Sequence record: OR532817.1
Reading direction: 5' to 3' (one strand)
DNA: 64,000 nucleotides
Under the pieces are notes generated by a model. That model saw only the letters and a program-made list of their open reading frames with translations, ran no database searches and was not told the origin of the DNA. Each line of letters opens with the position of its first letter. The stretch's first letter is position 1. The position numbers and the translations under genes are program-made. Shown one piece after another: positions 748 through 19,054 of the stretch.

Positions 748-762
748 TTTACAAATCTTTAC
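748..762. promoter_or_regulatory. CpxR-type tandem box
   Basis: TTTAC-AAATC-TTTAC, the reverse complement of GTAAA-N5-GTAAA. Confidence 0.55.
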
Positions 763-788
763 AAAAAGATTCTAAATGCGAATACAAA

Positions 789-803
789 TGATAATGATTC
801 TCA
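789..803. promoter_or_regulatory. Fur-box-like site
   Basis: TGATAATGATTCTCA. Confidence 0.7.
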
Positions 804-811
804 TTTACAGT

Positions 812-860
812 ACTGAATACTTTTCCCCACGCTCTGGCGTCTCCGGTTCCTCCCGTCTAT
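812..860 (-). ncRNA. Two-hairpin sRNA-like element, copy 1
   Basis: Minus-strand TTGACT (889-894)/TATAAT (867-872); core hairpin ACGC-CAGA-GCGT then GGGG; no ORF. Confidence 0.5.
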
Positions 861-962
861 ATAAACATTATACAGTACTGAAATATTAAGTCAATACTAT
901 TTTTTCAAAAAGATTAAAATAAAATACTTGCAATCCTGATATTATTATATTATAATGTTTAC

Positions 963-1010
963 AGTACTGAGAAAGTGCTTTTGCCCGCTAGGGTGCGGGG
1001 GAGTATGCGT
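963..1010 (+). ncRNA. Two-hairpin sRNA-like element, copy 2
   Basis: TTGCAA (928)-17-TATAAT (951); AGTACT-GAGAA-AGTGCT; GCCC-GCTA-GGGT-GCGG. Confidence 0.55.
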
Positions 1011-1014
1011 TAAA

Positions 1015-1029
1015 TGAGAATGATAATCA
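1015..1029. promoter_or_regulatory. Fur-box-like site between convergent sRNA copies 2 and 3
   Basis: TGAGAATGATAATCA. Confidence 0.7.
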
Positions 1030-1039
1030 TTTACAGTAC

Positions 1040-1080
1040 TGGACGGATTTTCCCACCCTCGGGGGTCTCTTTTTGTCTAT
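1040..1080 (-). ncRNA. Two-hairpin sRNA-like element, copy 3
   Basis: Minus-strand TTGATA (1109-1114)/TATAAT (1087-1092); ACCC-CCGA-GGGT-GGGA. Confidence 0.5.
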
Positions 1081-1119
1081 GTGGTAATTATACAGTACTG
1101 GAATACTATATCAAGTCTC

Positions 1120-1134
1120 TTTACAAATCTTTAC
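1120..1134. promoter_or_regulatory. CpxR-type tandem box
   Basis: TTTACAAATCTTTAC. Confidence 0.55.
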
Positions 1135-1228
1135 AATCCACCCGGGGAGATTTATCTTTACAATAAAAGTACTTGCATAATTCTTTCAGTACTGCTATTA
1201 TATATTCATACCAAACAGGAGAACTACC

Positions 1229-1399
1229 ATGAAATACGCGTACTCTTATTTTATTGTAAACGGTGAACGTTTGACCATCGGCCAGGCAGCGGTAAAGCAT
1301 GAAATCATTTGCGATGATCTGGCAAAGATGCTACCAGGTGAAACGCAAGAGTTTTACAAGGGCTTTCAGAAAGTCACTGTAACACGTTGTGAAGATTGA
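1229..1399 (+). CDS. Hypothetical protein (56 aa, not in ORF track)
   Basis: Promoter at 1173, RBS CAGGAG, MKYAYSYFIVNGE...RCED*. Confidence 0.75.
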   Translation: MKYAYSYFIVNGERLTIGQAAVKHEIICDDLAKMLPGETQEFYKGFQKVTVTRCED

Positions 1400-1464
1400 T
1401 CCAGTATTAGGGGTAGGAATACCCCTAAAACGTCCTGTAACGCATTATAAGAGGTTTTTATAAT

Positions 1465-1692
1465 ATGGCTATAGAAGTTAACGCTGGGGATATAAAGGCG
1501 GCTGTACTGCGTACCCTGAAAGCATACGGCAGAAAGCTGAATGATCGCAACGTTCCCTATTATTTCCTTGCTGCTACTCATAAAATGGCAATCGCTGAGG
1601 CTCGCGGGTGGCTGAATGATCGCAGTACTGTAAAGAGTACCAGAACAAGAAACGCAATTGAGCGATGGATAAAAGAATTAAATCATTTCTAA
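1465..1692 (+). CDS. Hypothetical protein
   Basis: 75-aa ORF with plausible composition; weak RBS. Confidence 0.6.
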   Translation: MAIEVNAGDIKAAVLRTLKAYGRKLNDRNVPYYFLAATHKMAIAEARGWLNDRSTVKSTRTRNAIERWIKELNHF

Positions 1693-1764
1693 TAGTTCAG
1701 TTATGGAATCAGTACTGATTCCCTGTTTAGTACTGAAATTATAAGGGGAGTTAATTAATTCCCC

Positions 1765-1779
1765 TTTACAAATCTTTAC
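1765..1779. promoter_or_regulatory. CpxR-type tandem box
   Basis: TTTACAAATCTTTAC, 10 bp upstream of the -35 of sRNA copy 4. Confidence 0.6.
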
Positions 1780-1823
1780 AAAAGAATGGTTGACATAGTA
1801 TCCCAGTACTGGTATTATGTATT

Positions 1824-1872
1824 CATAGACAGAACAAGTCTTTGGCCCACCGGGTGCGGAGGAGTATCTATT
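1824..1872 (+). ncRNA. Two-hairpin sRNA-like element, copy 4
   Basis: TTGACA (1790)-17-TATTAT; AGAC-AGAACAA-GTCT; GCCC-ACC-GGGT-GCGGAGGAGTATCTAT. Confidence 0.65.
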
Positions 1873-1880
1873 AGATTGAA

Positions 1881-1901
1881 TGATAATGATAATGATTCTC
1901 A
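1881..1901. promoter_or_regulatory. Overlapping Fur-box-like sites between convergent sRNA copies 4 and 5
   Basis: TGATAATGATAATGATTCTCA. Confidence 0.75.
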
Positions 1902-1914
1902 TTTACTGTACTGA

Positions 1915-1965
1915 ATATATTTCCGCACCCTTTTGGGCTTTTCGATTACTTTCTACTTGTTAATA
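1915..1965 (-). ncRNA. Two-hairpin sRNA-like element, copy 5
   Basis: Minus-strand TTGCAT...TATACT; GCCC-AAAA-GGGT-GCGGAA. Confidence 0.5.
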
Positions 1966-1998
1966 AGTATACCATAATCAGTACTGAATGCAATGGTC

Positions 1999-2013
1999 TT
2001 TACAAATCTTTAC
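1999..2013. promoter_or_regulatory. CpxR-type tandem box
   Basis: TTTACAAATCTTTAC. Confidence 0.55.
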
Positions 2014-2110
2014 AAAAGAAAATAATTATAAAAAGTACTGAAAAAGTACTTGACGCAATAATGTAGTACTGGCATAATACATCCATACCAAACAGAACGG
2101 AGTAACTAAA

Positions 2111-2398
2111 ATGTTTAATGAAAATGATCATATTGTTAAAGAGTTTTCTTTCAGTAAGCCTATCCATTTAGAAAACGGTGAAACGCTGGACAATAAATTT
2201 TATGGTAGTATTATTAAGCGTTATACATCGCGGAGTAGTACTGGAATTTTGTGGGAAGTGAATAAACAGTACAATGGTAATTCGCTGGTTGTCAATGAGT
2301 GGGAAAGTTATGCAGTAGCTGAAATGGATTTTTCTAACTTTATTACTGAATCTTTGAACGATGATATCTTTTACAAGTTCACAGCGGAAAGGGTTTAA
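2111..2398 (+). CDS. Hypothetical protein
   Basis: Own promoter at 2049, RBS GGAG. Confidence 0.8.
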   Translation: MFNENDHIVKEFSFSKPIHLENGETLDNKFYGSIIKRYTSRSSTGILWEVNKQYNGNSLVVNEWESYAVAEMDFSNFITESLNDDIFYKFTAERV

Positions 2399-2518
2399 AA
2401 AGTTTTAAAGAGTACTTGACAACATAAACCAGTACTGTATAATGTATTGCATAGAAAGGAGATTCCATTATTCTGGAATCTCCGATAAAACAAACTAATC
2501 GGTGAAGGAGTAATTGCC

Positions 2519-3127
2519 ATGAATGTTATCGATACCATCTATTCTAAATCTTTTATCGAACTGAATGAAGAGCAGAAAGAAAAAGCAATTGATATTATGC
2601 GGGAAATTGAAAATCAGGACACTACCCCTTATTGGTCAATTGATCTTGTTAACCAGATGAAAGAAAAATTAGTACAATATGGAATTGATGATTCTGAAAT
2701 TTTGTGGTCTGGATTTTGTTCACAGGGAGACGGTGCAAGTATCAGCACTGAATCAATTAATACTGAGATGTTTTTACGTAAGGTAAAAGCGTGGTCTAAA
2801 TTTAAAGGCTTGCGTAAATTCATCTCCGAAGAAACTATTTCTTTGAGTGTTCGCCGGGTGAGCCATCATTACTATCATGAATATTGTGTTAGTGGTAATG
2901 TTGAAATTGCTTATTGTGAAGATGTTACCGCCAAACAAGAACAATTAGTGGACGATTTGCAAACTTTGATCACAAATACTATTCGTGATTTGTCTCGTGA
3001 ATTGTATAAAGATTTAGGGAATGAAAACGATTATCATAACAGCGATGAAGCATTGATTGAATTGATTAATGCAAATGATTATCATTTCAAAGTTAACAGT
3101 ACTGGCGACGTGTTAGGACTTGCATAA
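2519..3127 (+). CDS. Hypothetical protein, WSGFxSQGDGA motif family
   Basis: Promoter 2416, leader hairpin 2458-2483, RBS AAGGAG; motif recalled from phage/plasmid hypotheticals. Confidence 0.8.
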   Translation: MNVIDTIYSKSFIELNEEQKEKAIDIMREIENQDTTPYWSIDLVNQMKEKLVQYGIDDSEILWSGFCSQGDGASISTESINTEMFLRKVKAWSKFKGLRKFISEETISLSVRRVSHHYYHEYCVSGNVEIAYCEDVTAKQEQLVDDLQTLITNTIRDLSRELYKDLGNENDYHNSDEALIELINANDYHFKVNSTGDVLGLA

Positions 3128-3215
3128 TGACTAAATTATATATTCGTTTCTGTTTTGCCTGGTACTTGTATAATCTGCAAAATGGTTATCCAGGGAAATA
3201 GTACTGATATACTGT

Positions 3216-3247
3216 AAAACGTCCTGTAAACGATTATGGGACGTTTT
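3216..3247. repeat. AAAACGTCC-N14-GGACGTTTT inverted repeat
   Basis: Near-identical copy at 11407-11438; partial copies 1427-1457 and 16062-16092. Confidence 0.85.
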
Positions 3248-3318
3248 AAGGAATATTAGTACAATGTTAGTACTGAATGATTTAAACGCCTTACAGTGGC
3301 TTACAGGAGATTATATCA

Positions 3319-3531
3319 ATGGCTAAATGTACTATTTGTAATAAAGAAATTATTCTTTCCCCTAGTGCAGAGGAACGAGCTAAAAAGTACGGCGGAAAAG
3401 CCAGCGACTACACAAAACTCTTTACTACTCATGCGACTTGTGCTGTTAATAAAAGTTCAAATGCCAACATTGAATTAATGCGTAAAATCAATAATGATTT
3501 TATTAATTCCTGTAAAAAAGTACTTGCATAA
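3319..3531 (+). CDS. Small putative Zn-binding protein
   Basis: CxxC (CTIC) and HxxC (HATC); RBS CAGGAG. Confidence 0.75.
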   Translation: MAKCTICNKEIILSPSAEERAKKYGGKASDYTKLFTTHATCAVNKSSNANIELMRKINNDFINSCKKVLA

Positions 3532-3610
3532 AGTTTTCAGTACTGGCATAATACATCTATACCAAACAAAAAGGGAATCAGTGCTGATTCCAAGATAAGG
3601 AGTAACTGAA

Positions 3611-3925
3611 ATGAGTACTAAAGAACTGAATGTAACTACCAACACTTATAAGATGTTAGGCGGTCGGATGTTGCGTGATTATTACGCAATTGAAATCGAA
3701 GAACGCGAATTACCCGAAGATAAACACTATTGGGAAAGTGGTGTGAGTCCTCTGTTACGGGTAACAACGTCTAAGCATGTTTTCTTTACTTCTCGCATTC
3801 ATGTTAATAAGCGTGTCGAATTGACTTTCTCGTTTAGTGGAAGCTATAAAGATTATGAGATATTAAATGATCATATCGTTATCAGCAAATTTATTCAAAT
3901 GTATGGTGCGGATTCTTTACTTTAA
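3611..3925 (+). CDS. Hypothetical protein
   Basis: Promoter 3524, leader hairpin, RBS AAGGAG. Confidence 0.8.
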   Translation: MSTKELNVTTNTYKMLGGRMLRDYYAIEIEERELPEDKHYWESGVSPLLRVTTSKHVFFTSRIHVNKRVELTFSFSGSYKDYEILNDHIVISKFIQMYGADSLL

Positions 3926-4011
3926 GTACTTGACAATTCGATCCAGTACTGTATAATGTATTACACCAAAGGGGATACATAGTGTATCCCTGATATAAAG
4001 GAGTAGCGACT

Positions 4012-4371
4012 ATGCGAGCTTTTAACGTTTATAAGAATGACAAGAAAATTGACGTTGTTTATTATTCCGAAGTAATGACGGCAAAAGAAGTAACCGATTT
4101 GCTGAATAGCCGTGGTGAATACAACGGCGAAGTAAAAGCATTTCGGTCATTGAATAGTGCGAATATTCGCACAGTACTGAAAAATGCTAAAACTGTTTTA
4201 TTCAATGATGACGAATATTTTAATAAAGATGTTACGGGTATTAAAAACCTGGAAGATCTGAAAAGCCTTATTGGTATTAAAGGCAACGTATACAAAGTGG
4301 GGGAAGTCGGATCTCGCCATGAATATAAATTAGCCAATAGTGATTATAAATTTTCAATCCTGGTAATGTAA
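4012..4371 (+). CDS. Hypothetical protein
   Basis: Promoter 3930, leader hairpin, RBS AAGGAG. Confidence 0.8.
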   Translation: MRAFNVYKNDKKIDVVYYSEVMTAKEVTDLLNSRGEYNGEVKAFRSLNSANIRTVLKNAKTVLFNDDEYFNKDVTGIKNLEDLKSLIGIKGNVYKVGEVGSRHEYKLANSDYKFSILVM

Positions 4372-4372
4372 T

Positions 4373-4576
4373 ATGAAAGTTTATATTTTGGAAGTGGAAG
4401 AATGTAATTCATATTCTTACAGTGGTACACTATCACGCGTGGAGGCTGTATTTGCCAGTGAGAAAGAAGCCCACGCCGCCGGGATTTAAAAAGTAAAAGA
4501 AGGCTATGAAGGTTATAGCGTCGATGCTTATGATATTCAGGGCGATCTTTCAGTACTGTTAAAGGAATTAAAATAA
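4373..4576 (+). pseudogene. Small ORF interrupted by an in-frame TAA
   Basis: MKVYILEV...HAAGI*(4487-4489)KVKEGYEG...LKELK*; frame continues to a stop overlapping the next ATG. Confidence 0.65.
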
Positions 4577-4791
4577 TGGAATATGAATTAATATATCATA
4601 CTCGATTATATGTTATTTTCTTTGAAATAACGTTATGGGGAGTAAAGGCAACGATTTATAATAAAGACGTTGCCGACGATCAAGAATGGATCGTTGTTGC
4701 AGAAGATAAAACGCCTCATGATTCGTTAAGTACTGATTTTAAATTATGCCGTGAATTATTAAAGAGTATAAGAAAAGATAATAATATATAA
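4576..4791 (+). CDS. Hypothetical protein
   Basis: TAATG coupling, RBS AAGGA. Confidence 0.7.
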   Translation: MEYELIYHTRLYVIFFEITLWGVKATIYNKDVADDQEWIVVAEDKTPHDSLSTDFKLCRELLKSIRKDNNI

Positions 4792-4794
4792 AAC

Positions 4795-4822
4795 AAAGGG
4801 GATCAATCGATCCCCTTTTTGT
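4795..4822. terminator. Bidirectional intrinsic terminator
   Basis: AAAGGGGATC-AATC-GATCCCCTTTTTT. Confidence 0.85.
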
Positions 4823-4842
4823 TTCAGTACTGAATTAATAAT

Positions 4843-4905
4843 AGATACACTACGGCACCCTATGGGTCAGTGCCTTGTGTCCGGCTTATGTGGTTATTAT
4901 GCCAG
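4843..4905 (-). ncRNA. Two-hairpin sRNA-like element, copy 6
   Basis: Minus-strand TTGACT-17-CATAAT; GCC-GGACACAA-GGC; ACCC-ATA-GGGT-GCCGTAGTGTATCTAT; points into the 4795 terminator. Confidence 0.65.
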
Positions 4906-4934
4906 TACTGCGAACATAAGTCAATAGATGATTT

Positions 4935-4949
4935 GTAAAGAAGTGTAAA
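4935..4949. promoter_or_regulatory. CpxR-type tandem box
   Basis: GTAAA-GAAGT-GTAAA, 11 bp upstream of the minus-strand -35 of copy 6. Confidence 0.6.
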
Positions 4950-5152
4950 TGCACAGGAAGCGTTTTAAGGCGTTAATCTGTTGCTGGTGGCTGATAGTAC
5001 AGAGAAGTGTTTTAGATTGATTGTAGGCCGTTGTAGGCGTTTATAGATAGTAAAGTACTGATAATGTTTAATGATCCTGGTATGTGCAAATTATTTTAAT
5101 TTTTTTCGTATTGGGTATTGACGGATTATGTCAGTACTGGCATAATGTATCA

Positions 5153-5220
5153 CATAGAGCGACGGGCAAGACAAGTAGTCAACCTGTAAGACATACGAAA
5201 ACCAGGTGACGTTGCACTGA
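5153..5220 (+). ncRNA. Candidate three-way-junction small RNA
   Basis: TTGACG (5118)-17-CATAAT; stems GCGACG/CGTTGC, GAC/GTC, ACCTG/CAGGT; no ORF. Confidence 0.45.
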
Positions 5221-5286
5221 TTCAGTACTGAATAATACATAACATCTAAATGTTGACAGTACTAAAAAATGTAGTATAATGATTAA

Positions 5287-5460
5287 CAGAAAGAAGCAAT
5301 CCAGTAAGCATGGATTAGTGATAAACGTAGGCCGGAATCACGAAAAACTTTCAAGGAAATACCCTTGTATAAAAAGGGAAGCGTTAAGCGTAGAACGTAA
5401 ACGCGAAAATCCTAGCCTTGAACTGAAAAAGTAAACAAGGCAATTACAGAAAAAAGATTT
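5287..5460 (+). ncRNA. Candidate multi-hairpin A-rich RNA or long leader
   Basis: TTGACA (5253)/TATAAT (5275); stems AATCCA/TGGATT, GTGAT/ATCAC, CAAGG/CCTTG, CCTTG/CAAGG; no + strand ORF. Confidence 0.35.
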
Positions 5461-5552
5461 AAAAAAGTAGTTGACAAGTACTAACGAGAATGAGATAATC
5501 TCTCTCGTTGAAACAAACAAACAATCTTAATCAAAACTTAAAGGTGAATAAA

Positions 5553-6053
5553 ATGGCTAAACTGAATTCTGTTGTTGTTGCTCTGATCGCTGGTGATATC
5601 GCTGCTCTGAATGCTTCTTTCGCGTCGGTATCGATGGAAGATATGAAAACTGTTCGTAACAACTTTAACGATTTTTACTCTAAATTCAAAGCTGCAAATG
5701 AAGCGGCGGAAGCGGCGGCAAAAGAGCGTAAAGCACAGATCGAAACCGAAACGAAAGAACTGGTAGACGCCCTGGTAACTGCTGGCCTGGATCTGGAAAT
5801 GGCCGCCGAAGTCGCCAGCCAGAAAATGGCGGTGAAATATCCCGAACTGGCTCCGAAGTCGGGAACTGGTAAAACCTGGTCGTTTGAAACCGTATTCGTT
5901 AACGTTGACGGTGAAAAACTGGAAATTGGCACCAAAGGCAACAAAGGCAGTATGAAAGCACTGGCGGCGGCACGCGAAGCAATTGCCGCTGGCAAATACA
6001 AAGATCGTGCTGAATGGATCGCCGCTCACGCCTGGACTGAAACCGAAGCGTAA
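5553..6053 (+). CDS. H-NS-like protein (putative)
   Basis: N-terminal coiled-coil pattern resembles H-NS (SMEDMKT...EAAEAAAKERKAQI...LVTAGLDLE vs TLETLEE...AAAAEVEERTRKL...LIADGIDPN); GKTWS vs H-NS TKTWT; strongly biased codons; promoter 5471; RBS AAGGTG. Confidence 0.5.
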   Translation: MAKLNSVVVALIAGDIAALNASFASVSMEDMKTVRNNFNDFYSKFKAANEAAEAAAKERKAQIETETKELVDALVTAGLDLEMAAEVASQKMAVKYPELAPKSGTGKTWSFETVFVNVDGEKLEIGTKGNKGSMKALAAAREAIAAGKYKDRAEWIAAHAWTETEA

Positions 6054-6075
6054 TAATTCAGTACTGTAATAATTA

Positions 6076-6105
6076 GCCTCCTGTAATTAGGAGGCTTTTT
6101 ATTTT
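6076..6105 (+). terminator. Intrinsic terminator
   Basis: GCCTCCT-GTAATT-AGGAGGC-TTTTTATTTT. Confidence 0.9.
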
Positions 6106-6189
6106 GTTCAAAAAAATATTTTAATTTATTTTTTGAACGGACTTAAAAAATCGGATATAATAATAAAGGGTGTTAATTACAGAGACCCC

Positions 6190-6300
6190 CATAGTGTTCG
6201 CTACGCTCACATAATGATCTTACTCGTTGCACTCGTAAGATCATTATCCAATCGGCCTTTGGCTATTTCTTTTTGATTTCCTACGGAAACCAAACGAAAC
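6190..6300. repeat. Serial hairpin array
   Basis: GTG-TTCGCTACGCT-CAC; ATAATGATCTTAC-TCGTTGCACTC-GTAAGATCATTAT; TTTGATTTC-CTACG-GAAACCAAA. Confidence 0.6.
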
Positions 6301-6669
6301 CACCAGCAAAGGCAGATCCCATTATTTGATTTAGTTAGTACTGCAATGAATTAGTTTAATCGCACTACAAAGCAATCAATCCCTTTTGTAATAGCTCATA
6401 GAACGCAATAAGACGCGTTTAAATGACTTCCCTATGTAATGCCATTCCTTTTTAATAAGTCCTCTTAAAACGCGTTACAGTTCGTTATACGGCGTTTAAT
6501 AATACTCATCATTTCTTTTTCAAAAAGTACTTGCATTAATGATCCAGTACTGCAATAATGTACTCACTGAAACGCAGTAAGCGAAGTAAGTAAATGCAAA
6601 TAAGTACTTGACAAAGTGTTGTAGTACTGGCATAATGAATACATCAAAACGATTAAGGAGAAACACCAA

Positions 6670-7143
6670 ATGTTAAAACTTCATAAAGTACTTGATAACG
6701 CAGTTGTAACCGACTTTTTCCTGTCTCTTAATAACGAACCGAAAACAGCGAAGGAAATTGTTTTGAGTGGTTACATTGCCAGCAAGTCAGAGATCGCACA
6801 TTTGGAAAGTGCTTTCAAGTGTGGGGATGTATTGTACAGAAAAATGCAAAATACCATCGAAGATTTGCAATATATCAATTTACGTGATATTGTAGACAAT
6901 AAATTAGATATTTCAGAAGAAGCACGCGAAAACCTGGTAAGTAAATTATGTTACCGCTGCCGAACTGCAAAATGGAATCGCATTCGTAGTATTATTACTT
7001 ACGATTTAAGTAAGATCGATTCTAAATCAATTCTTGAACGTATGTTATTAAATTTGCAAAGCAATGAATGGTTTTATACTGCTGCCCAATCTCATAGCGA
7101 AGAAATTGCATATATTCGTGATTATGTAATTTACAGCAAGTAA
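6670..7143 (+). CDS. Hypothetical protein
   Basis: Tandem promoters 6531 and 6608, RBS AAGGAG. Confidence 0.85.
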   Translation: MLKLHKVLDNAVVTDFFLSLNNEPKTAKEIVLSGYIASKSEIAHLESAFKCGDVLYRKMQNTIEDLQYINLRDIVDNKLDISEEARENLVSKLCYRCRTAKWNRIRSIITYDLSKIDSKSILERMLLNLQSNEWFYTAAQSHSEEIAYIRDYVIYSK

Positions 7144-7216
7144 TTAATAATTGATTAGCCATCAATAAAGCTGGTGGCTAATAGAATATTAATAACCTGT
7201 TAGGAGAATAATCTTT

Positions 7217-7486
7217 ATGAAAGGTATTAGTACTTTAATTGATAAAAACACTCATGTAAGACGTTCAATGATTGCCGTATCACTGGCTAAAGTTGTTGCA
7301 AGTGGTTATCTGGTTTTTGTTGTAGATGGTAAATTGCAAGAGCGTTCAATTGCATTTAGTACTAAAGAAAATTGCCGTTATATTGTATACAAGAAAGAAG
7401 CATACAAGATAGATTTACCAGCGAAACCGATCTCCGGTGGTTACAATGTTGAAAGCCTTTATGAAAGGCCACCGTATACTGCGTAG
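7217..7486 (+). CDS. Hypothetical protein
   Basis: RBS TAGGAG. Confidence 0.75.
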   Translation: MKGISTLIDKNTHVRRSMIAVSLAKVVASGYLVFVVDGKLQERSIAFSTKENCRYIVYKKEAYKIDLPAKPISGGYNVESLYERPPYTA

Positions 7487-7740
7487 AATCGATTTTGAGC
7501 GGCTTTAATGAAATATAGGGTATCAGTACTGATACCCGTTTAAAACAGTGTAGGAGTGATTCTGTGAAGCGTGAACAAGCTTTATTGACGCCTGAAGAGG
7601 CAAGACGCTATGAAATGTTTTCAAACCAGGAAACGATCAAAGCGGCACAATATAACCCGGTTGCTTGTACAGTACAAAGAAAGAATTTTGTACTAAATGA
7701 AGTAGAAAGTATTATCAAATCAAATAAGGAGTAAAACGCT

Positions 7741-8013
7741 ATGCAAAATAACCGCCCAATGATCCGCAACATGCTTTTCGTATTCCAGAAAAAAGTTAAT
7801 GTAACTTCGGTAAATGGTGAACGTAAATTAAATGCAGCATTCGCCAAATATACCCAAAGTAAAAACATCCATTACTTTTATCTTACTCTGAATGAGTTTA
7901 ATGATCTGGTAAAAGAAATGTTTGTCAGTACTGAAATTGTTGCACCTGTAAGCACTGATATCATTCTAAAAGAATGGGAAAGTTTTTACAAAAGTTCTGT
8001 TGTAATCGCTTGA
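7741..8013 (+). CDS. Hypothetical protein
   Basis: RBS AAGGAG. Confidence 0.8.
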   Translation: MQNNRPMIRNMLFVFQKKVNVTSVNGERKLNAAFAKYTQSKNIHYFYLTLNEFNDLVKEMFVSTEIVAPVSTDIILKEWESFYKSSVVIA

Positions 8014-8067
8014 CAACATAATCCAGTACTGGCATAATAACTACATAGACCACAAAGGAGAAACATA

Positions 8068-8247: not shown

Positions 8248-8330
8248 AAGTACTTGCTTTAATCATTCAGTACTGTATAATGTATTACATCAAAGGGAAT
8301 GAATCATTCATTCCCACATAACCAGGAGTA

Positions 8331-11235: not shown

Positions 11236-11239
11236 AAAA

Positions 11240-11395: not shown

Positions 11396-11554
11396 TGATG
11401 TACTGTAAAACGTCCTGTAAGCGATTATGGGACGTTTTAAGGAATAGCACTATGATTTATTCAGTACTGTGAAAAAACTCTTGTAAATTGATTCCAGTAC
11501 TGTATAATGCTTTACATGGGAAAATTATTCTCCACATTATTAGGAATAAAGAAT

Positions 11555-11782
11555 ATGTTTTATCTTGGAACTGTTAAAAAAAATTCAAATGTAATTGAAG
11601 CATCATTGATTTGTACTAACAATGAAGTGGCTGGCTATGCTTTTGCACAGGATCGATTCATGAAACATTATACCGGTGATAATTCAGTGTCATTTGATTT
11701 TGAACGTATCGGTGATGGTGTTACAATTATGAAATTTGAAGATCTCCCTGAAATCGATTTTGATTTTGTCGTTACACTGTAA
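11555..11782 (+). CDS. Hypothetical protein
   Basis: Start moved to 11555; promoter at about 11480. Confidence 0.75.
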   Translation: MFYLGTVKKNSNVIEASLICTNNEVAGYAFAQDRFMKHYTGDNSVSFDFERIGDGVTIMKFEDLPEIDFDFVVTL

Positions 11783-11881
11783 AAAAAGTACTTGCATAAT
11801 TCTTTCAGTACTGTATACTGTACTTATACCAAACAAAAGCAAATGGAATCAGTACTGATTCCCTGTAAAGGAGATAGACCA

Positions 11882-12133
11882 ATGTCAGATCGTATCACTC
11901 GCAAAATGGTAGCAGATAAAGTTGCTGGGCTGAATCTTGCTATTGACCGTCGTGGATTACCTGAAAAATATCAGGTAGTACTGGAAGATGGTAAATTCAA
12001 TATTGAATTACAGCCGTCTCATGTTTATACTAATCCAAAAGTGATACAAAAGAATTTGAGTACACGAGAAGCATATTTTTATCTGAAAGGTATGTTTCAA
12101 ATTCTTCTCGACAATGTACCACATAAAGATTAA
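11882..12133 (+). CDS. Hypothetical protein
   Basis: Start moved to 11882 (RBS AAGGAG); palindromic leader GGAATCAGTACTGATTCC. Confidence 0.8.
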   Translation: MSDRITRKMVADKVAGLNLAIDRRGLPEKYQVVLEDGKFNIELQPSHVYTNPKVIQKNLSTREAYFYLKGMFQILLDNVPHKD

Positions 12134-12135
12134 AG

Positions 12136-12166
12136 AAAAAGGGGAGACAACAAGTCTCCCTTTTTT
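12136..12166. terminator. Bidirectional intrinsic terminator
   Basis: AAAAAGGGGAGAC-AACAA-GTCTCCCTTTTTT. Confidence 0.85.
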
Positions 12167-12188
12167 GTATTCAGTACTATATATATTT

Positions 12189-12236
12189 TAGATACAATTT
12201 CGCACCCTGTGGGTTAGTAGCTTGTTCTGCTTTATG
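12189..12236 (-). ncRNA. Two-hairpin sRNA-like element, copy 10
   Basis: Minus-strand TTGACA-17-TATAAT; AGC-AGAACAA-GCT; ACCC-ACA-GGGT-GCGAAATTGTATCTA; points into the 12136 terminator. Confidence 0.7.
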
Positions 12237-12361
12237 TAGTAATTATATGATAAAGCTGGTGGCTTGTCAACACTTATTTTAAAATAAAAAGTACTGAATA
12301 GTACTTGCAAAAAGTATTCAGTACTGTATAATGTTTGTATTGAGATTAAGGAGTACTTACT

Positions 12362-12901
12362 ATGTTAATCAAAATGTATCACGGTTCTAATAATTTTGAT
12401 CATCGCCGTGGATATCTGGGCGGAAAACCTGGCAATTTTCATATGGGTTTTGGACTATATCTAACTAACTCTTATCGCTGGGCTGATAATTATGGGCGAC
12501 GTCATTATGAGTTAGATTTAGATATTTGTAGTACTGGTGCCGCACATAATGTATGGATTCCTACTAAACACTTTATGGAATTCATAAGAGTATATTGTAC
12601 TAAAAAGTTTTATACAATGTGCTGTAAAGAATTTAAAGACCGTGAATCTTTGAATGTAGAACGCGTTGAATTGCTTATTATCAATATGGAAAGGCACGTT
12701 ACGAAAATCGCTAAACCATTTGCTGAATTCGTCGCTGCCTGGGGTTGTACGCATAGCATTGAAATATCCGGTAACTATGGTGGTGTTTGTGTGCGGCTTT
12801 ATGATTTCAGTACTATAAAGAATTGTATCATAAGCCAGGAAACTCAGGATTTTTATTATCCAGATGAATTGACAAGATATCCTCAAAAAAACTTGTATTA
12901 A
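12362..12901 (+). CDS. ADP-ribosyltransferase-fold protein (putative)
   Basis: YHGS...GFGLYLT....A..YG signature of H-Y-type/PolyVal-like ARTs. Confidence 0.55.
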   Translation: MLIKMYHGSNNFDHRRGYLGGKPGNFHMGFGLYLTNSYRWADNYGRRHYELDLDICSTGAAHNVWIPTKHFMEFIRVYCTKKFYTMCCKEFKDRESLNVERVELLIINMERHVTKIAKPFAEFVAAWGCTHSIEISGNYGGVCVRLYDFSTIKNCIISQETQDFYYPDELTRYPQKNLY

Positions 12902-12953
12902 TGATTCAGTACTGATATAATGAATTAAATTAACCAGGAGGAAATATCTTAAA

Positions 12954-13082
12954 ATGAATAAACGTCAATTGATGATCGATGCATCTCGTTTCCGTTCAAA
13001 AGAAGAAAAGAGAAGTTGCATTAAATGGGTTTTGTCAACTTTCATTATTGGATTACTTATTGTTGCTTTTGTTTATAGTTAG
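12954..13082 (+). CDS. Small membrane protein (42 aa, not in track)
   Basis: RBS CAGGAGG; hydrophobic C-terminus WVLSTFIIGLLIVAFVYS. Confidence 0.7.
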   Translation: MNKRQLMIDASRFRSKEEKRSCIKWVLSTFIIGLLIVAFVYS

Positions 13083-13166
13083 TACTTGACAATATAATCC
13101 AGTACTGTATAATGTTTATCAAAGGGAATGAATTATTCATTCCCGATTAATCAAAGGAGTTTTGCC

Positions 13167-13391
13167 ATGATCTATATTATCAAAGTATCCCCGACTGTAG
13201 GCAAATCAGAAGTTGTAGCCGTTATCACTTCCCTGGAAGCGAAAAATCTTCATACCCCGTTTAATGTATGGGTGGAGGATAATTTCGGCCAATTCAGTAC
13301 TGCTGAATATATCGAACAATTCGCTGTCCCGGATACTGGCAAAATCAAAGTGGATCGTATCCTGGATTTTGATAACAGTAATTACTTTTAA
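13167..13391 (+). CDS. Hypothetical protein
   Basis: Start moved to 13167; promoter, hairpin, RBS AAGGAG. Confidence 0.8.
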   Translation: MIYIIKVSPTVGKSEVVAVITSLEAKNLHTPFNVWVEDNFGQFSTAEYIEQFAVPDTGKIKVDRILDFDNSNYF

Positions 13392-13477
13392 AAACGTTTG
13401 ACAACTGATTTAAGTACTGTATAATGTTTATCAAAGGGAATGAAATATTCATTCCCGATTAATCAAAGGGGTTTATC

Positions 13478-13624
13478 ATGAAAGAGTATATCTTTGAAGT
13501 AACTTTCACCTTTGGCCCGCACCAACTGATCCGGTCTTCTGGCTACAACCGCGAACAAGCATTCAGCAACCTTCGCCGTATGTACCCCAATGTCGTGACC
13601 TGGGTCAAGTGTGAAGAAGCATAA
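13478..13624 (+). CDS. Hypothetical protein (48 aa, not in track)
   Basis: Cassette duplicated from 13103-13160; RBS AAGGGG. Confidence 0.7.
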   Translation: MKEYIFEVTFTFGPHQLIRSSGYNREQAFSNLRRMYPNVVTWVKCEEA

Positions 13625-13704
13625 AATAATTAGTCAGTACTATTGACAACGGGTGATAGTACTGCTATAATTATTTTAACTTATACGGAATGGAGTTAAA
13701 ACAA

Positions 13705-13941
13705 ATGTTCAGTGTCAGCAAACAAGGCGACAAATTTCTGGTTCAATACCATCATTTTGATCTGGTATACACTCAGCCAGATTGTGTATTCAGTACTCAG
13801 GAAGGTGCCGAAAAGCACAAAAAAGCCTTGATCGAAAATAGCAACAGTGGTACATTAGATTTCATCCAACAGTACTGGAATGAATCTAAGCTGGTGGACG
13901 GTTATTCCAACACAGTTTATTATGTAGGTATCACTGATTAA
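13705..13941 (+). CDS. Hypothetical protein
   Basis: Promoter, RBS TGGAG. Confidence 0.75.
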   Translation: MFSVSKQGDKFLVQYHHFDLVYTQPDCVFSTQEGAEKHKKALIENSNSGTLDFIQQYWNESKLVDGYSNTVYYVGITD

Positions 13942-13956
13942 TCAGGAGTACTGTTA

Positions 13957-14040
13957 ATGTATATGCCAATTATCATACCGTTAGCAGTACTGTTAATCGC
14001 CGCCGTTATCTGCGAACAATATCATTTGTTAGGAATGTAA
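13957..14040 (+). CDS. Hydrophobic microprotein (27 aa)
   Basis: RBS CAGGAG; MYMPIIIPLAVLLIAAVIC. Confidence 0.5.
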   Translation: MYMPIIIPLAVLLIAAVICEQYHLLGM

Positions 14041-14043
14041 ACT

Positions 14044-14214
14044 ATGATTCAATGTGAATTGTCAGTACTGATCACACTGTTCTATATGTTGGGGCAAAAG
14101 AAACAAGATATTTCTGGTGATAATGCATTATTGTATCAATCATTAGACCAATGGCAACGATCTGAATTAAGCAATGCATGGGCGAAAGGCTACAACGACA
14201 GTACTGCAAAATAA
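14044..14214 (+). CDS. Hypothetical protein (56 aa)
   Basis: Follows the previous ORF; RBS AGGA. Confidence 0.55.
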   Translation: MIQCELSVLITLFYMLGQKKQDISGDNALLYQSLDQWQRSELSNAWAKGYNDSTAK

Positions 14215-14262
14215 TTTAAAAAAAGGGGTTGACTTATGTCAGCCCTTTTGTTATTATTAGTA

Positions 14263-14312
14263 CATAGCAAGAACAATGCTCAAGCCCACAGGGTGCGGAG
14301 GTGTATCTATAG
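14263..14312 (+). ncRNA. Two-hairpin sRNA-like element, copy 11
   Basis: TTGACT (14229); AGCA-AGAACAA-TGCT; GCCC-ACA-GGGT-GCGGAGGTGTATCTATA. Confidence 0.7.
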
Positions 14313-14400
14313 TTTATGTTGGTCTGAATCATTAATTTTCTTGACAATTGGTTTAGTACTGGATATAATAGCCGCCATTGAATACATGAGGATTTTAAAA

Positions 14401-14667
14401 ATGGCCTATCATACACCACATAGACACTTCATTGATAAACGCGGTATGGCTTTTAAAGCAATGAGTGACAATCGTAACACACAAATGTACTTTAAAGATA
14501 TGACGTTAGAAGAAGCAATTGAAGCCGTAAGGAATGATCGTAAGCTTTCCAAGAAAGTTGCATCAGTACTTAATGCTTTTTGGTTTGAACGTACTACCAA
14601 CAAAGAATACAAAGAAAAGATGATTGCACTTGGTAAAGTAGTACGAGAAGAAAAATTATATCTTTAA
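14401..14667 (+). CDS. Hypothetical protein
   Basis: Start moved to 14401 (RBS GAGGA, own promoter). Confidence 0.75.
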   Translation: MAYHTPHRHFIDKRGMAFKAMSDNRNTQMYFKDMTLEEAIEAVRNDRKLSKKVASVLNAFWFERTTNKEYKEKMIALGKVVREEKLYL

Positions 14668-14730
14668 GTACTTGACTATGTGATTCAGTACTGCTATTAT
14701 ATATTCATACCAATTAAGGAGATTGACCAA

Positions 14731-14838
14731 ATGAAACAAGCAAAATTTAATTCAGAAATTAAAGCAGCAAAAGCACACAAAGTACAGTTAGCAGTACTGG
14801 TTATTGTATCAATCTTTTTGCTGTGCAACATCGGCTAA
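14731..14838 (+). CDS. Small membrane protein (35 aa)
   Basis: Promoter 14672, RBS AAGGAG, hydrophobic C-terminus. Confidence 0.65.
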   Translation: MKQAKFNSEIKAAKAHKVQLAVLVIVSIFLLCNIG

Positions 14839-14918
14839 AATAATTATTACAGTACTATTGACAACACGTGATAGTACTGGTATAATTACTTTACCAAATC
14901 AAAAAGGAGTAACCAAAA

Positions 14919-15194
14919 ATGCGGATTAAACTTACCAGTGATGAGATTCATTCAGTACTTACTACCAATATGCAGGACTGGAAAAAGTACGCTGATATCG
15001 AAGAAGTCCAGGAACTCAATGATGATTTGAGTGTAGATGAAATTATCACTATTTGCTCATCTCAATTCTTTGATGATATCAATGATGAAGAGCAAGATGT
15101 ATTTGATATCATGGATAAACATTTTATTGCGTATGATGTTTTTCCGTACACTCGCCAGGCTTATATTCTTATTCACAACATTTATAACAAATAA
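14919..15194 (+). CDS. Acidic hypothetical protein
   Basis: Promoter, RBS AAGGAG; D/E-rich. Confidence 0.8.
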   Translation: MRIKLTSDEIHSVLTTNMQDWKKYADIEEVQELNDDLSVDEIITICSSQFFDDINDEEQDVFDIMDKHFIAYDVFPYTRQAYILIHNIYNK

Positions 15195-15206
15195 GGAATA
15201 ATAATC

Positions 15207-15572
15207 ATGGAAAAAGAATTTAAAATCAAATACAATATCAGTACTGATGGCGGTTTTGAAGTTCCAGAAGAAGATCAAGAACGCCTTAATGATGTTATTA
15301 TGATTGACATTTCAAATAAAATCATTCAAGGCTACCGCGAAGGTGAATTGTGTGAATCGTTGATGGATCAATTCGATGAAGTGGAAACGTTTTATCGTGG
15401 CTGGTGGAGTATCGAAGAAGTTCACAAAGTACACGAATACCGCGTATTCTGGATTAACGGCGTTAATGATATCGAAGATATCATTGTAAAAGAAAGTAGT
15501 GAATCCGCCGCCATTCAGTACTTTAAAGATCACTACCCAAACAAACGTTATCACCATTTAGAAAAAATTTAA
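15207..15572 (+). CDS. Hypothetical protein
   Basis: RBS AAGGA. Confidence 0.8.
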   Translation: MEKEFKIKYNISTDGGFEVPEEDQERLNDVIMIDISNKIIQGYREGELCESLMDQFDEVETFYRGWWSIEEVHKVHEYRVFWINGVNDIEDIIVKESSESAAIQYFKDHYPNKRYHHLEKI

Positions 15573-15659
15573 AAAGTACTTGACACCTAATATCAGTACT
15601 GATATATTAATACGCATAGGGGCAAACAACTTGCCCCACCAAACAAAAGGAACTACCAA

Positions 15660-16016
15660 ATGATTACTAAATTCTACGCTACTCGTGAACTGGCTCGGAT
15701 CGTCGCTCGTGAAGAAGGTGAAACCTTCAAAGATATGGGTAAAGATTCCCCTGCTGGTCAACGCTGGGCAGTACTGTTCCGCGAGGTCAAAGACCTGGTA
15801 GAAAACGCTAAAGCCGTTGAAATGAACGTTCCCACCAAAGAAGATAAAGATCTGACTGATGCCCTCGCCGCCGCATTCTCCGCGATGGATAAAGCCGCTG
15901 CGGTAGTACTGAAAGTGCCGGAATTCGTAACCCGCAAAGTGCATTCAGTACTACAAAATAAATTCAACGGTAAACAGGTTCAGGTGTTTACTAAACGTAA
16001 AATTCCGGTCATGTAA
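15660..16016 (+). CDS. Hypothetical protein (ATRxxAR...RWAV motif)
   Basis: Promoter 15580, leader hairpin, biased codons. Confidence 0.8.
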   Translation: MITKFYATRELARIVAREEGETFKDMGKDSPAGQRWAVLFREVKDLVENAKAVEMNVPTKEDKDLTDALAAAFSAMDKAAAVVLKVPEFVTRKVHSVLQNKFNGKQVQVFTKRKIPVM

Positions 16017-16094
16017 AATCTGACTATTACAGTACTAACAAAGGGGCTTCAATGCCCCTTTAAACGTCCTGTAAACCATTCTAAGAGGTTTTGC

Positions 16095-16343
16095 ATGAAA
16101 AAGGTACAACTACACAAAGGAGTAATGAAAGTTCATTATAATGCCCCGCAACGCATTATAGATAGAGCCATTGAACTAGCCAATCAATATCTAGCTGGTG
16201 GATTAACTCCCAGGAAGTTAAGCAACGGGAAGTTATATGTAATCAACGTTGATACTAATAATCGTATAGTAATCAAAGGTGAAAGCATATCACTGTATGA
16301 ACATCAACAGTATAACAAGAAAGTAAAAAATATTAGTAGATAA
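16095..16343 (+). CDS. ParE/RelE-like toxin-fold protein (putative)
   Basis: PRKL...VINV...RIVI...LYEHQQYN resembles the PRRL/RWRLL/LMSHE.YN pattern; probable start 16125 (RBS AAGGAG). Confidence 0.45.
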   Translation: MKKVQLHKGVMKVHYNAPQRIIDRAIELANQYLAGGLTPRKLSNGKLYVINVDTNNRIVIKGESISLYEHQQYNKKVKNISR

Positions 16344-16422
16344 GTGTTGACAACTGATTTCAGTACTACCATAATGTATACATACAAGGCAATACCACCT
16401 AATAACATAGGAGTAACTGAAA

Positions 16423-16845
16423 ATGAAAAAATCCACTAAAATTATCTTAGGTGTATTTGTTGTTCCGGCAGTAGCCTTTTTTACTTGTGCTATGATTTTT
16501 GGTGATGCTTCTCGGGTTGCCGCAAAAATCGAAAAAGAAAAACAAGTCCAGGTTGAAGTTAAGAAAGAAGAAAAGAAAAATTATAACACTGTATGGGAAG
16601 CAATTTGCCATACCAGTAATGGTAAAAGGATCTCCATCCTTACAGCGATGAATAATGGAAAATCAATCGTCGGAAATGAATATATGGAAGTTACTTCCAG
16701 TACTGGTAAAGAATTTGTAATGACGAACTATAATAACAATAATGTTGCAATTGTTACACAGGATTTTAAAGGCAATGCAGTACTGGAATATCATACGGAA
16801 TATGAAGTAATATTTGCAAAATGCACGTTTGAATGGGGTGCATAA
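16423..16845 (+). CDS. N-terminally membrane-anchored protein
   Basis: Basic start then IILGVFVVPAVAFFTCAMIF; promoter, RBS. Confidence 0.75.
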   Translation: MKKSTKIILGVFVVPAVAFFTCAMIFGDASRVAAKIEKEKQVQVEVKKEEKKNYNTVWEAICHTSNGKRISILTAMNNGKSIVGNEYMEVTSSTGKEFVMTNYNNNNVAIVTQDFKGNAVLEYHTEYEVIFAKCTFEWGA

Positions 16846-16902
16846 AAATAAACAAAAAATCAAAAAAGGGGTTGACATATGTCAGCCCCTTTGCTATTAT
16901 TA

Positions 16903-16950
16903 ATATCAAGAAAACAAGCTAACCCACAGGGTGCATAAATGTATCTATAG
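16903..16950 (+). ncRNA. Two-hairpin sRNA-like element, copy 12
   Basis: TTGACA (16872); AAAACAA; ACCC-ACA-GGGT-GCATAAATGTATCTATA; hairpin 1 weak. Confidence 0.6.
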
Positions 16951-17025
16951 TTTATTAAAGAATTTTAGTACTTGACAACGTAGTACATCAGTACTAAAAT
17001 ATCTACATACAAAGGAGATTACCAA

Positions 17026-17610
17026 ATGAACAAACATCTTAAAGTACTGAATAAATGTAAATCCAATACCGAAATGTTACTGTACTGTTACAAAAATTTA
17101 ATTAAACTCGGTAAAGGTTCATCCCGCACGGTATTTTTGTTAACAAAAAATAAAGTACTGAAAGTTGCTCATAACCATATTGGCAACCAACAGAATACGG
17201 CGGAAATCACTGCCTGGCTGTATGTTGATTATGATCGCTATTATAATAAACGTTTTTTCGCTAAAGTGTTCCCTGATATGTCGCATTTTAAAGATGTATA
17301 CATAGTACAGGAGTACTGCGACAATATCAGTACTAAAGAAGCGAAGCCATACATCGAACATTACTTGACACCTCGCACTATTGAAAATGAGCGTGCTAAA
17401 CGCTTCCACACGGCGTTAAGAGATGTAGACAATACCCTTAACTATAAAACGCTGGTGGACTTAAACATGGGCAATATAGGCCGTTCTGTAAGGGGTGCAA
17501 TCAAACTACGTGACTATGGATTATCTGAACATATTGCTGAACAGTACCGAGAAGCCCGCTTCCAATACCAGAAGCTCAAAAGTATTAGTAAAATAAGTAT
17601 TGATTTATAA
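17026..17610 (+). CDS. Ser/Thr protein kinase (phage type)
   Basis: LGKGSSRTV Gly-loop, VLK lysine, helix-C E, DLNMGN catalytic loop, DYG. Confidence 0.8.
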   Translation: MNKHLKVLNKCKSNTEMLLYCYKNLIKLGKGSSRTVFLLTKNKVLKVAHNHIGNQQNTAEITAWLYVDYDRYYNKRFFAKVFPDMSHFKDVYIVQEYCDNISTKEAKPYIEHYLTPRTIENERAKRFHTALRDVDNTLNYKTLVDLNMGNIGRSVRGAIKLRDYGLSEHIAEQYREARFQYQKLKSISKISIDL

Positions 17611-17677
17611 TTTCAGTACTGGTATAGTACTTTCACAGGGGAGATAATCTCCCCCAAATCACAAAGGAGATTTTACC

Positions 17678-18040
17678 ATGAGTACTAAACCATTCGTTAC
17701 TACCCGTTCAAATCTCACCGAAATCTATGTACACGGTGGGTATGAGGAAACGTATGTCACTGGTATTATGGTAGAATTCCATCAGGGTTATCGGTTTATG
17801 TTGGTAGATTCAGAAATCTATCATACCCAACAAGATAAACATGGTTATGTCAATAAGTACTCCACCGATGAAGTACTGAAACGCCTGGATAACAAAATTA
17901 AACAAATTCAAAAACATCTTGACAACGGCGGAAAACTTAATCATTTACTTTGGGATAGCTTAGATCCCTGCTACGGTTCGGATGCATATGGTAAAAGCCG
18001 TGACACTGCAATGAAAGTACTTAAAGATTATTTCTTTTAA
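17678..18040 (+). CDS. Hypothetical protein
   Basis: Promoter, hairpin, RBS AAGGAG. Confidence 0.8.
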   Translation: MSTKPFVTTRSNLTEIYVHGGYEETYVTGIMVEFHQGYRFMLVDSEIYHTQQDKHGYVNKYSTDEVLKRLDNKIKQIQKHLDNGGKLNHLLWDSLDPCYGSDAYGKSRDTAMKVLKDYFF

Positions 18041-18121
18041 GTATTGACAAGCAATTCCAGTACTGTATAATATATTTCACAAGGGGAACATACCGTTCCC
18101 CGATTCAAGGAGATTAACCAA

Positions 18122-18304
18122 ATGAATAAATTCACAGTATTCGAAACAATCGCAGCAAACGGTGCTCCGATGTACTATGCTGTCAAAGGTGATACAGTAC
18201 TGGTATCCGGCAACGGTTGTCAATCATTTAAACCTTCTAACGTTTCCCCGTATTATGTCAGAACTAATATGGCGTATAGTCATATGCAAAAAATTACTCA
18301 ATAA
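18122..18304 (+). CDS. Hypothetical protein
   Basis: Promoter, hairpin, RBS AAGGAG. Confidence 0.8.
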   Translation: MNKFTVFETIAANGAPMYYAVKGDTVLVSGNGCQSFKPSNVSPYYVRTNMAYSHMQKITQ

Positions 18305-18386
18305 CCTATTGACATAGGTTATCAGTACTGGCATAATGTATTTCAAGGAGGTAATAACACCTCCTACCTTCAAGGAGTAGTTGACT

Positions 18387-18623
18387 ATGAATACTAAAGA
18401 AATGCTTTGTGAGTTCGCCAGTAACAATCTTGGCAACGCCGCTTTCATTGATGGTTTTAATTACGTAGCAACTCGTGATCAAGAAGGTAAAGTATTCGTT
18501 AAAGATCGTATGGGCTTTTCTATCCAGGTTCAATCCGGTACTGCAAGCCATATCGACGGCATGAATGTATGGGCTGCTACTATCCCCGGTGATGGAACAT
18601 ATCATTTCCGTATCGTAAAATAA
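18387..18623 (+). CDS. Hypothetical protein
   Basis: Promoter, hairpin, RBS AAGGAG. Confidence 0.8.
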   Translation: MNTKEMLCEFASNNLGNAAFIDGFNYVATRDQEGKVFVKDRMGFSIQVQSGTASHIDGMNVWAATIPGDGTYHFRIVK

Positions 18624-18722
18624 TTTAAAAAGTACTGGACAATACAATCCAGTACTGTATAATGTTTTGCATACACAAGAGATTCCAGTACTGGAATCTC
18701 TAATCTAAAGGAGAATACCAAA

Positions 18723-19004
18723 ATGATTAACGGCACTCTGATTAACTATGCAAAACGCCGTGATGTAGAAATAGAAGTACTGAAAGCAGGCGAAGTTGAC
18801 GACGACGCCCAGGTATGGTTCTACACCGCAGACAATGATTGTGAACCAGTACTGATGTATCTGATTAATAATGATGGTTCTCTTACTTATCGTAGCAAAC
18901 TGATGAAGTCCCTGGAAGATATGCCAGCACATATCAATAATAAAGAAGTGCTGAAACGCGTAATCTGCTACATCTCAGACCAGCACAAAGCGGATATGAT
19001 GTAA
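18723..19004 (+). CDS. Hypothetical protein
   Basis: Promoter, 24-bp palindromic leader, RBS AAGGAG. Confidence 0.8.
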   Translation: MINGTLINYAKRRDVEIEVLKAGEVDDDAQVWFYTADNDCEPVLMYLINNDGSLTYRSKLMKSLEDMPAHINNKEVLKRVICYISDQHKADMM

Positions 19005-19054
19005 TCTTTACAAATATGGGGGTTGACTAATGTCAGCCCTATTGGTATTATATA

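Follow-up and report, generated by a model that had tools for sequence, protein, structure and literature searches.

Response regulators of the OmpR/PhoB family recognize a characteristic type of DNA site: two direct repeats with a 10-11 bp periodicity, located upstream of a promoter's -35 element or replacing it. Promoters regulated by OmpR carry three contiguous 20-bp sites between about -100 and -40, the second half-sites of which start with G. The consensus for CpxR is GTAAA-N5-GTAAA, with a spacer tolerance of 4-8 bp (PMC3158067). In the E. coli cpxR-cpxP intergenic region, read in the cpxP orientation, the corresponding sequence is TTTAC-GTTGT-TTTAC, and a CpxR~P site would be expected to stand, as this one does, within ~100 bp upstream of a regulated start site. 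The UP element (consensus AAAWWTWTTTTNNNAAA; PMC2412878) occupies positions -57 to -41, and UP-like elements have been reported at promoters of the RaK2-like phage CBB (PMC5259590). The DNA analyzed here, a window of 64,000 nucleotides from sequence record OR532817.1, contains in its left part a set of tandem boxes, TTTAC-N5-TTTAC, placed mostly at the promoters of a family of small-RNA-like genes. No description of this box was found in the literature searched; it adds a new example to a known class of elements upstream of promoters, and a host response regulator and the host RNA polymerase (RNAP) itself are among the candidate partners.

Bases 1-20,000 of the window are identical (100%) to positions 124,001-144,000 of OR532817.1, the genome of the RaK2-like Klebsiella jumbo phage RCIP0023, and align, patchily and at 93-97% identity, with RaK2, K64-1, Muenster and KP13-7, all of the genus Alcyoneusvirus. 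The Muenster counterpart falls within the terminal repeat that PhageTerm predicts for that phage (1-20,030), and the G+C content of the window steps down from ~36-39% to 27-29% at ~19,700-20,200, near the terminal-repeat end: window bases 1 to ~20,000 are the ~20-kb terminal repeat of RCIP0023. The box at 748 corresponds to Muenster position 1037, so that ~0.3 kb of the genome lies between its left physical end and the start of the window. A hexamer scan of the first 20.5 kb finds 43 strong sigma-70-type promoters, most of which have AGTAC abutting the -35 element and CAGTACTG abutting the -10 element.

Six exact copies of TTTAC-N5-TTTAC are present (at 748, 1120, 1765, 1999 and 10127 on the plus strand and at 4935-4949 on the minus strand) where 0.51 would be expected, and no shuffled sequence reached six. 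All six conform to GTAAA-N(4-8)-GTAAA on one strand or the other, the form by which a CpxR~P site is recognized, and their layout is that of OmpR/PhoB-family sites in general. Five of them are the same 19-mer, with AAATC as the spacer; the minus-strand copy (4932-4950) has the variant spacer ACTTC. The repeat unit is a 10-bp direct repeat, (T/C)CTTTACAAA, in two head-to-tail copies. When the sites are aligned, information content drops to background just beyond ~20 bp and the flanks are unrelated, so that longer duplications do not account for the copies. The box is a discrete, sharply bounded element. Single half-sites stand at 1155, 8699 and 19005. As a class, one-mismatch matches show no enrichment (20 found, 15 expected), and the only meaningful one, by virtue of its context, is at 8691-8708, where TTGAC precedes TTTAC. 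An earlier note on this DNA, made from the sequence alone, had listed the six exact tandems, the imperfect one at 8691 and a half-site at 19007 (19007-19011); all are real, and the half-site at 1155-1164 is an addition to them.

Five of the boxes stop 10-11 bp short of a predicted -35 element, in the orientation of the cpxP box, as the earlier note had claimed for copies 4, 6, 7, 8 and 13 of the small-RNA family. The gap from the last TTTAC is 10 bp for the tandem at 1764-1783 (P1790, copy 4) and for the minus-strand variant at 4932-4950 (P4924, copy 6), and 11 bp for the imperfect tandem at 8691-8708 (P8717, copy 7), the tandem at 10126-10145 (P10153, copy 8) and the half-site at 19005-19014 (P19023, copy 13). 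P1790 (1790-1818, plus strand; TTGACA, 17-nt spacer, TATTAT, with an extended -10) can stand for the boxed small-RNA promoters, and P10153 (10153-10181, plus strand) has TTGATT, a 17-nt spacer and TATTAT. The constant distance that the earlier note gave for these five copies holds; the three other exact tandems (748, 1120 and 1999), on which it did not comment, do not stand 10-11 bp before a plus-strand -35 element. On the minus strand, the tandems at 1119-1137 and 1998-2017 have their ends 5 bp ahead of the -35 elements of the promoters of copies 3 and 5: P1114 (1087-1114, minus strand; TTGATA, 16-nt spacer, TATAAT), which two promoter scans recovered independently and which exemplifies this second geometry, and a promoter at 1993-1966 (minus strand; TTGCAT at 1993-1988, 16-nt spacer, TATACT). 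In both copies the distance from the -10 element to the RNA core is 29 nt, as is typical of the family. The two geometries thus differ by ~5 bp and by orientation. The tandem at 1998-2017 also stands 36 bp before the -35 element of P2050, and the box at 747-766, which has the common 19-mer, is without a clear promoter: a weak minus-strand candidate (TTGTTT, 18-nt spacer, TATGAT, 741-712) lies 6 bp away. The half-site TCTTTACAAT at 1155-1164 is placed 11 bp before the -35 element (TTGCAT, at 1173) of the promoter of a protein gene. Boxes accompany 7 of the 13 small-RNA promoters and 1-2 of ~31 others (Fisher p = 3e-4 to 1e-3), an association that may be partly inherited because the small-RNA genes are paralogues.

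The phage box shares with the CpxR~P boxes of E. coli cpxP and Yersinia ppiA two perfect pentamers and the 5-bp spacer, and with the cpxP box also a coding-strand TTTAC ahead of the promoter; from the end of the box to the putative -10 element there are 31 nt at cpxP (TAAACT, with an inferred start site) and 33 nt at P1790. The OmpR sites F1 of ompF and C1 of ompC are likewise head-to-tail, on the coding strand and upstream of the -35 element, and they too have TTTAC, followed 10 bp on by GTTAC (F1) or GAAAC (C1). The 15-mer of the phage is identical to the cpxP box at 10 of 15 positions, to F1 at 10 of 15 and to C1 at 9 of 15; sequence alone therefore cannot separate CpxR from OmpR. The half-sites of RstA and KdpE are also close to that of the box. 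Compared with the triple sites of OmpR promoters, the phage has a single 20-bp site with two identical halves. The earlier assignment to CpxR thus stands as far as repeat, spacing and orientation go, but OmpR fits the same evidence equally well.

These properties lead us to favor, tentatively and at somewhat less than even odds, a reading in which the box is the site of a head-to-tail-binding regulator, most probably a host protein of the OmpR family, with CpxR and OmpR as the best candidates. According to this reading, the discrete 20-bp site, whose two 10-bp repeats (each CTTTACAAA with one base added) are spaced by one helical turn, would be overlaid on the upstream zone, used by UP elements and class I activators, of a subset of the early promoters that host RNAP serves, chiefly the small-RNA promoters. 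A winged-helix host response regulator of the OmpR/PhoB family would bind there as a tandem dimer, next to the zone contacted by the RNAP alpha subunits, and would tune, compete with or cooperate with the contacts of the alpha C-terminal domains. The bound regulator would modulate promoters that are already strong: tuning, rather than on/off activation. Protein binding to the box, the identity of the binder and the sign of its effect are matters that we infer.

Selection on the box is indicated by its conservation. Across RCIP0023, Muenster, RaK2, KP13-7 and OU509535, none of 90 box columns is variable against 47 of 480 columns in the flanks (p = 5e-4), in a comparison for which 10 of the 15 columns per site were preset by the search pattern. 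A search anchored on the flanks found no orthologue with a mutated or decayed box, the only losses being replacement of a whole module in KP13-7. At the 10127 locus the upstream flank of KP13-7 is homologous to E. coli phages G17 and 121Q, which carry the orthologous box; between KP13-7 and G17 the box is identical at 17 of 17 positions and the neighboring DNA at 73%, 63% and 77%, and at 70% identity a 17/17 match would occur by chance with a probability of ~0.2%. Purifying selection acts on the box both inside a phage genus and across genera. It is also confined to the early terminal repeat: in the complete 346-kb genome of RaK2 the 17-mer occurs five times, always in the terminal-repeat region. 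Its abundance is specific to lineage. It is plentiful in Alcyoneusvirus and occurs singly in Asteriusvirus (one 17-mer in 121Q); the tandem is absent from fENko-Kae01 and fHe-Yen9-03, and fENko-Kae01 keeps the promoter-proximal TTTAC alone, with a 10-bp gap.

Several of the same comparisons, and some others, weigh against a host regulator. The phage sites show no more variation in spacer and flanking bases than in the pentamers, a conservation stricter than what CpxR is known to require, and E. coli genomes have no match of ~19 nt or longer to the box. The positions of boxes 748 and 1120 are occupied in KP13-7 (locus L006, 4330-4600) by a different small-RNA module with plain A/T-rich DNA where the boxes would be; at the 1120 position this DNA precedes the orthologue of P1114, and at the 748 position it precedes a plus-strand small-RNA promoter that RCIP0023 does not have. 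KP13-7 is thus a natural box-less control for these two positions, and its replacements suggest that generic DNA can also occupy the upstream slot. In the 10-11 bp geometry the box coincides with the profile common to the early promoters and agrees with 11 of the 14 specified positions of AAAWWTWTTTTNNNAAA, with additional C at -56 and -51. The two geometries are awkward for a single activation mechanism; half of the perfect phage sites, unlike the cpxP box, are in another geometry, and the phage context is lytic. The boxed promoters, again unlike that of cpxP, are not of the activator-dependent kind: with a near-consensus -35 and an extended -10 they should not need an activator, which makes tuning more plausible than switching on. 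Activation by an OmpR-family regulator, as the earlier note proposed it, consequently retains a site layout that is typical of the family but has to contend with the UP-slot overlap and with promoter strength. The further link to an envelope-stress response triggered by injection is speculation.

At stake is whether a lytic jumbo phage has wired its earliest transcripts to host two-component signaling or has evolved an unusually specific UP element. The second alternative, a sharpened UP element that is bound by the RNAP alpha C-terminal domains and boosts strong early promoters without a dedicated regulator, is possible, though we regard it as doubtful. Averaged over 42 early promoters, the upstream DNA has A-runs at -55 to -53 and at -45 to -40 on either side of a T-run at -51 to -47, with C at -46 in 12 of the 42, and the same profile is found in RaK2, G17, fENko-Kae01 and fHe-Yen9-03, which represent four phage genera. 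The box has in common with UP elements its position (~-60 to -41), the alternation of T-runs and A-runs and the association with strong sigma-70 promoters, and since it lies in the UP slot, a constant distance from the -35 element is what any UP-type element would show. The A/T-rich DNA that KP13-7 has in the place of boxes 748 and 1120, in the latter case before an orthologous small-RNA promoter, argues in the same direction. So do viral contigs in IMG/VR, where the exact 17-mer has ~100 matches, mostly due to chance or within coding sequence, but also occurs 10 bp before a TTGAC hexamer in three unrelated groups (L060/L069, L092 and L024/L097/L107); when two of these groups (L060, L024) were used in Blast searches, no named phage proved to be related. 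However, UP elements accept many A/T sequences, whereas here a 19-mer with three conserved C residues is exactly repeated, invariant in five genomes and identical at 17 of 17 positions between genera. Moreover, no plus-strand promoter has the three perfect tandems at 748, 1120 and 1999 in its UP register, so that UP function alone does not explain the exact conservation: the inverted geometry matches the UP consensus at just 7 of 14 positions, and 748 has no promoter in register. Should the box prove to be a UP variant and nothing else, the finding would be an ordinary one, adding a sequence-constrained example to a known class.

A protein of the phage itself, an early or a virion protein that would use the box as an operator to tune or shut off a subset of early promoters, is an unlikely binder. 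The analogue is TF1 of the Bacillus phage SPO1, an HU-type protein that binds early promoters in the terminal redundancy and needs hydroxymethyluracil DNA. What is alike is a specific (in the present case putative) protein site at early promoters served by host polymerase in a phage terminal repeat; the sites themselves do not resemble each other in sequence, and a TF1-like protein was not identified here. Conservation of the full 20 bp including the spacer is what one would expect of a dedicated operator, restriction of the box to the early terminal repeat is equally in character, and so is the lineage-specific pattern, with many boxes in Alcyoneusvirus, one in Asteriusvirus and no tandem in fENko-Kae01 and fHe-Yen9-03. 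Among the products of the terminal repeat are many small proteins of unknown function and an H-NS-like one. Yet ten open reading frames (ORFs) in the left part of the repeat gave no winged-helix or helix-turn-helix match in Pfam, which returned only an H-NS N-terminal domain (ORF 5508-6050) and DUF7300, and with a phage binder the 10/10 match to a host regulator's consensus would be a coincidence. The 75-residue ORF at 1465-1689, which lies between boxes and which the Muenster annotation calls sigma-like on the basis of HHpred, was considered as a binder and set aside for want of a match to a DNA-binding fold: its homologues are found in Alcyoneusvirus only, its neighbors in a protein atlas are weakly helix-turn-helix, and its structural model is a plain three-helix bundle with no Foldseek match at E < 0.8. 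The product of the 5508-6050 ORF (plus strand, 181 residues) has its H-NS N-terminal domain as PF22470 (E = 6e-6); in Muenster the annotation of the orthologue is that of a putative DNA-binding protein, based on an HHpred match to E. coli NP_417155.1, which we take to be StpA.

It is very improbable that the box has no function and was left behind when promoter cassettes duplicated or recombined: the early region is mosaic, with relatives' wastewater contigs joined at promoter repeats and a mosaic junction at the left edge of box 10127 in KP13-7, but the copies have unrelated flanks and are therefore not parts of longer duplicates, and the box is invariant where the flanks vary by ~10% and identical between genera. 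The contigs in question come from close relatives in wastewater metagenomes; at window positions 600-6500 their joints skip 0.4-3 kb and fall at repeated promoter sequences, which suggests that cassettes are shuffled by recombination between early promoters. The public runs with matching DNA are wastewater metagenome or "RNA" libraries stored as contigs, and the four that were compared bear on presence and on mosaic joints.

Other identities were considered for the box and rejected. Compared by eye with consensus sequences, it lacks the G on the plus strand that a Fis site would have and the WATCAA core of an IHF site, its half-sites would need inversion to make a TyrR site, and PhoP, ArcA, CreB and PmrA have other half-sites or an 11-bp spacing. 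It resembles GCTTTA, the MotA box of phage T4, but is not located at -30. TTTACA could serve as a -35 element (5/6 to TTGACA), but only 1999 and 1130 are followed by -10 elements, weak ones, and the other sites have no consistent -10. The tail of an intrinsic terminator is likewise not a general identity: a hairpin precedes the site at 1765 only.

The genes downstream of the boxed promoters belong to a family of 13 small-RNA-like copies, whose cores are at ~832(-), 990(+), 1064(-), 1846(+), 1936(-), 4866(-), 8775(+), 10207(+), 10618(+), 12213(-), 14285(+), 16923(+) and 19079(+); numbering them in order of position reproduces the copies 4, 6, 7, 8 and 13 of the earlier note. Every copy has its own promoter, a short hairpin on the 5' side and a CC(C/T)-NNN-GGGTG core that does not vary; most have a GTATCTAT-like tail as well. 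The family is kept in Alcyoneusvirus, in Asteriusvirus (G17, 121Q, PBECO4), in fENko-Kae01, the Yersinia fHe-Yen9 phages, GAP32 and CBB and in Salmonella relatives; the RaK2-like phages that carry it are phages of Klebsiella, E. coli, Yersinia, Cronobacter, Pectobacterium and Salmonella. When copies from four phages are folded singly, 28 of 38 form a 5' stem of 3-5 bp, made from many different stem sequences, with a purine-rich loop of 6-7 nt, and the folding energy of the 5' segment averages -2.7 kcal/mol (-0.8 kcal/mol for shuffles). Stems of varied sequence together with lower folding energy support a function at the RNA level. RNAalifold, applied to all 38 copies, recovers the CCC/GGG stem alone, since the register of the 5' hairpin is not constant. 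An Rfam scan gave no match for the family, and a tRNA scan was likewise empty. On sequence grounds, "small-RNA promoters" is a reasonable label for these putative units. Five of these promoters are located inside a terminator-like hairpin (8712-8745, 10559-10592, 14224-14257, 16867-16900 and 19018-19051) that reads GGGG, TTGAC, loop, GTC, CCCC and T-run, with the -35 element in the stem and the T-run in the promoter spacer; the annotations of G17 and GAP32 list the corresponding sequences as ARNold terminators.

The left end of the terminal repeat has a second cluster of sites that look like those of a host regulator. Palindromes resembling Fur boxes (≤3 mismatches to GATAATGATAATCATTATC) number six where 0.26 are expected, and all are located at 498-1906 (498-620, 790-808, 1016-1034 and 1882-1906). 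They lie between or beside small-RNA units, at the convergent pairs P928(+)/P1114(-) and P1790(+)/P1993(-), and similar ones follow small-RNA copies in fENko-Kae01 and fHe-Yen9-03. The boxes are therefore not isolated as host-regulator-like sites, a point in favor of a host binder. This concentration of such sites at one end of the repeat is also what motivates the idea of decoys or of conditional expression: the end of the genome that is injected first would bear sites of the CpxR/OmpR type and of the Fur type either in order that small-RNA output be tied to envelope-stress and iron status, or as decoys for CpxR~P and Fur. We consider this a long shot. If it did operate as a decoy, the terminal repeat, of which each genome has two copies, would upon replication titrate away CpxR~P and Fur, so that the envelope-stress response would be dampened and iron-uptake genes de-repressed. 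Early transcription in RaK2-like jumbo phages, which are candidates for phage therapy against Klebsiella and E. coli, is almost unstudied, and a conserved box at multi-copy small-RNA promoters in the first-injected DNA offers a concrete and cheap experimental handle on it.

Two repeated sequences deserve separate mention. Seven further IMG/VR contigs (L014, L016, L042, L045, L082, L017 and L019) have iteron-like arrays of CTTTACA or TGTAAAG repeats. The palindrome CAGTACTG, which abuts the -10 element of most early promoters, occurs 88 times in the window (0.54 expected); 62 of the 88 copies are within bases 1-20,000, and copies are also found away from promoters and in the low-G+C part of the window.

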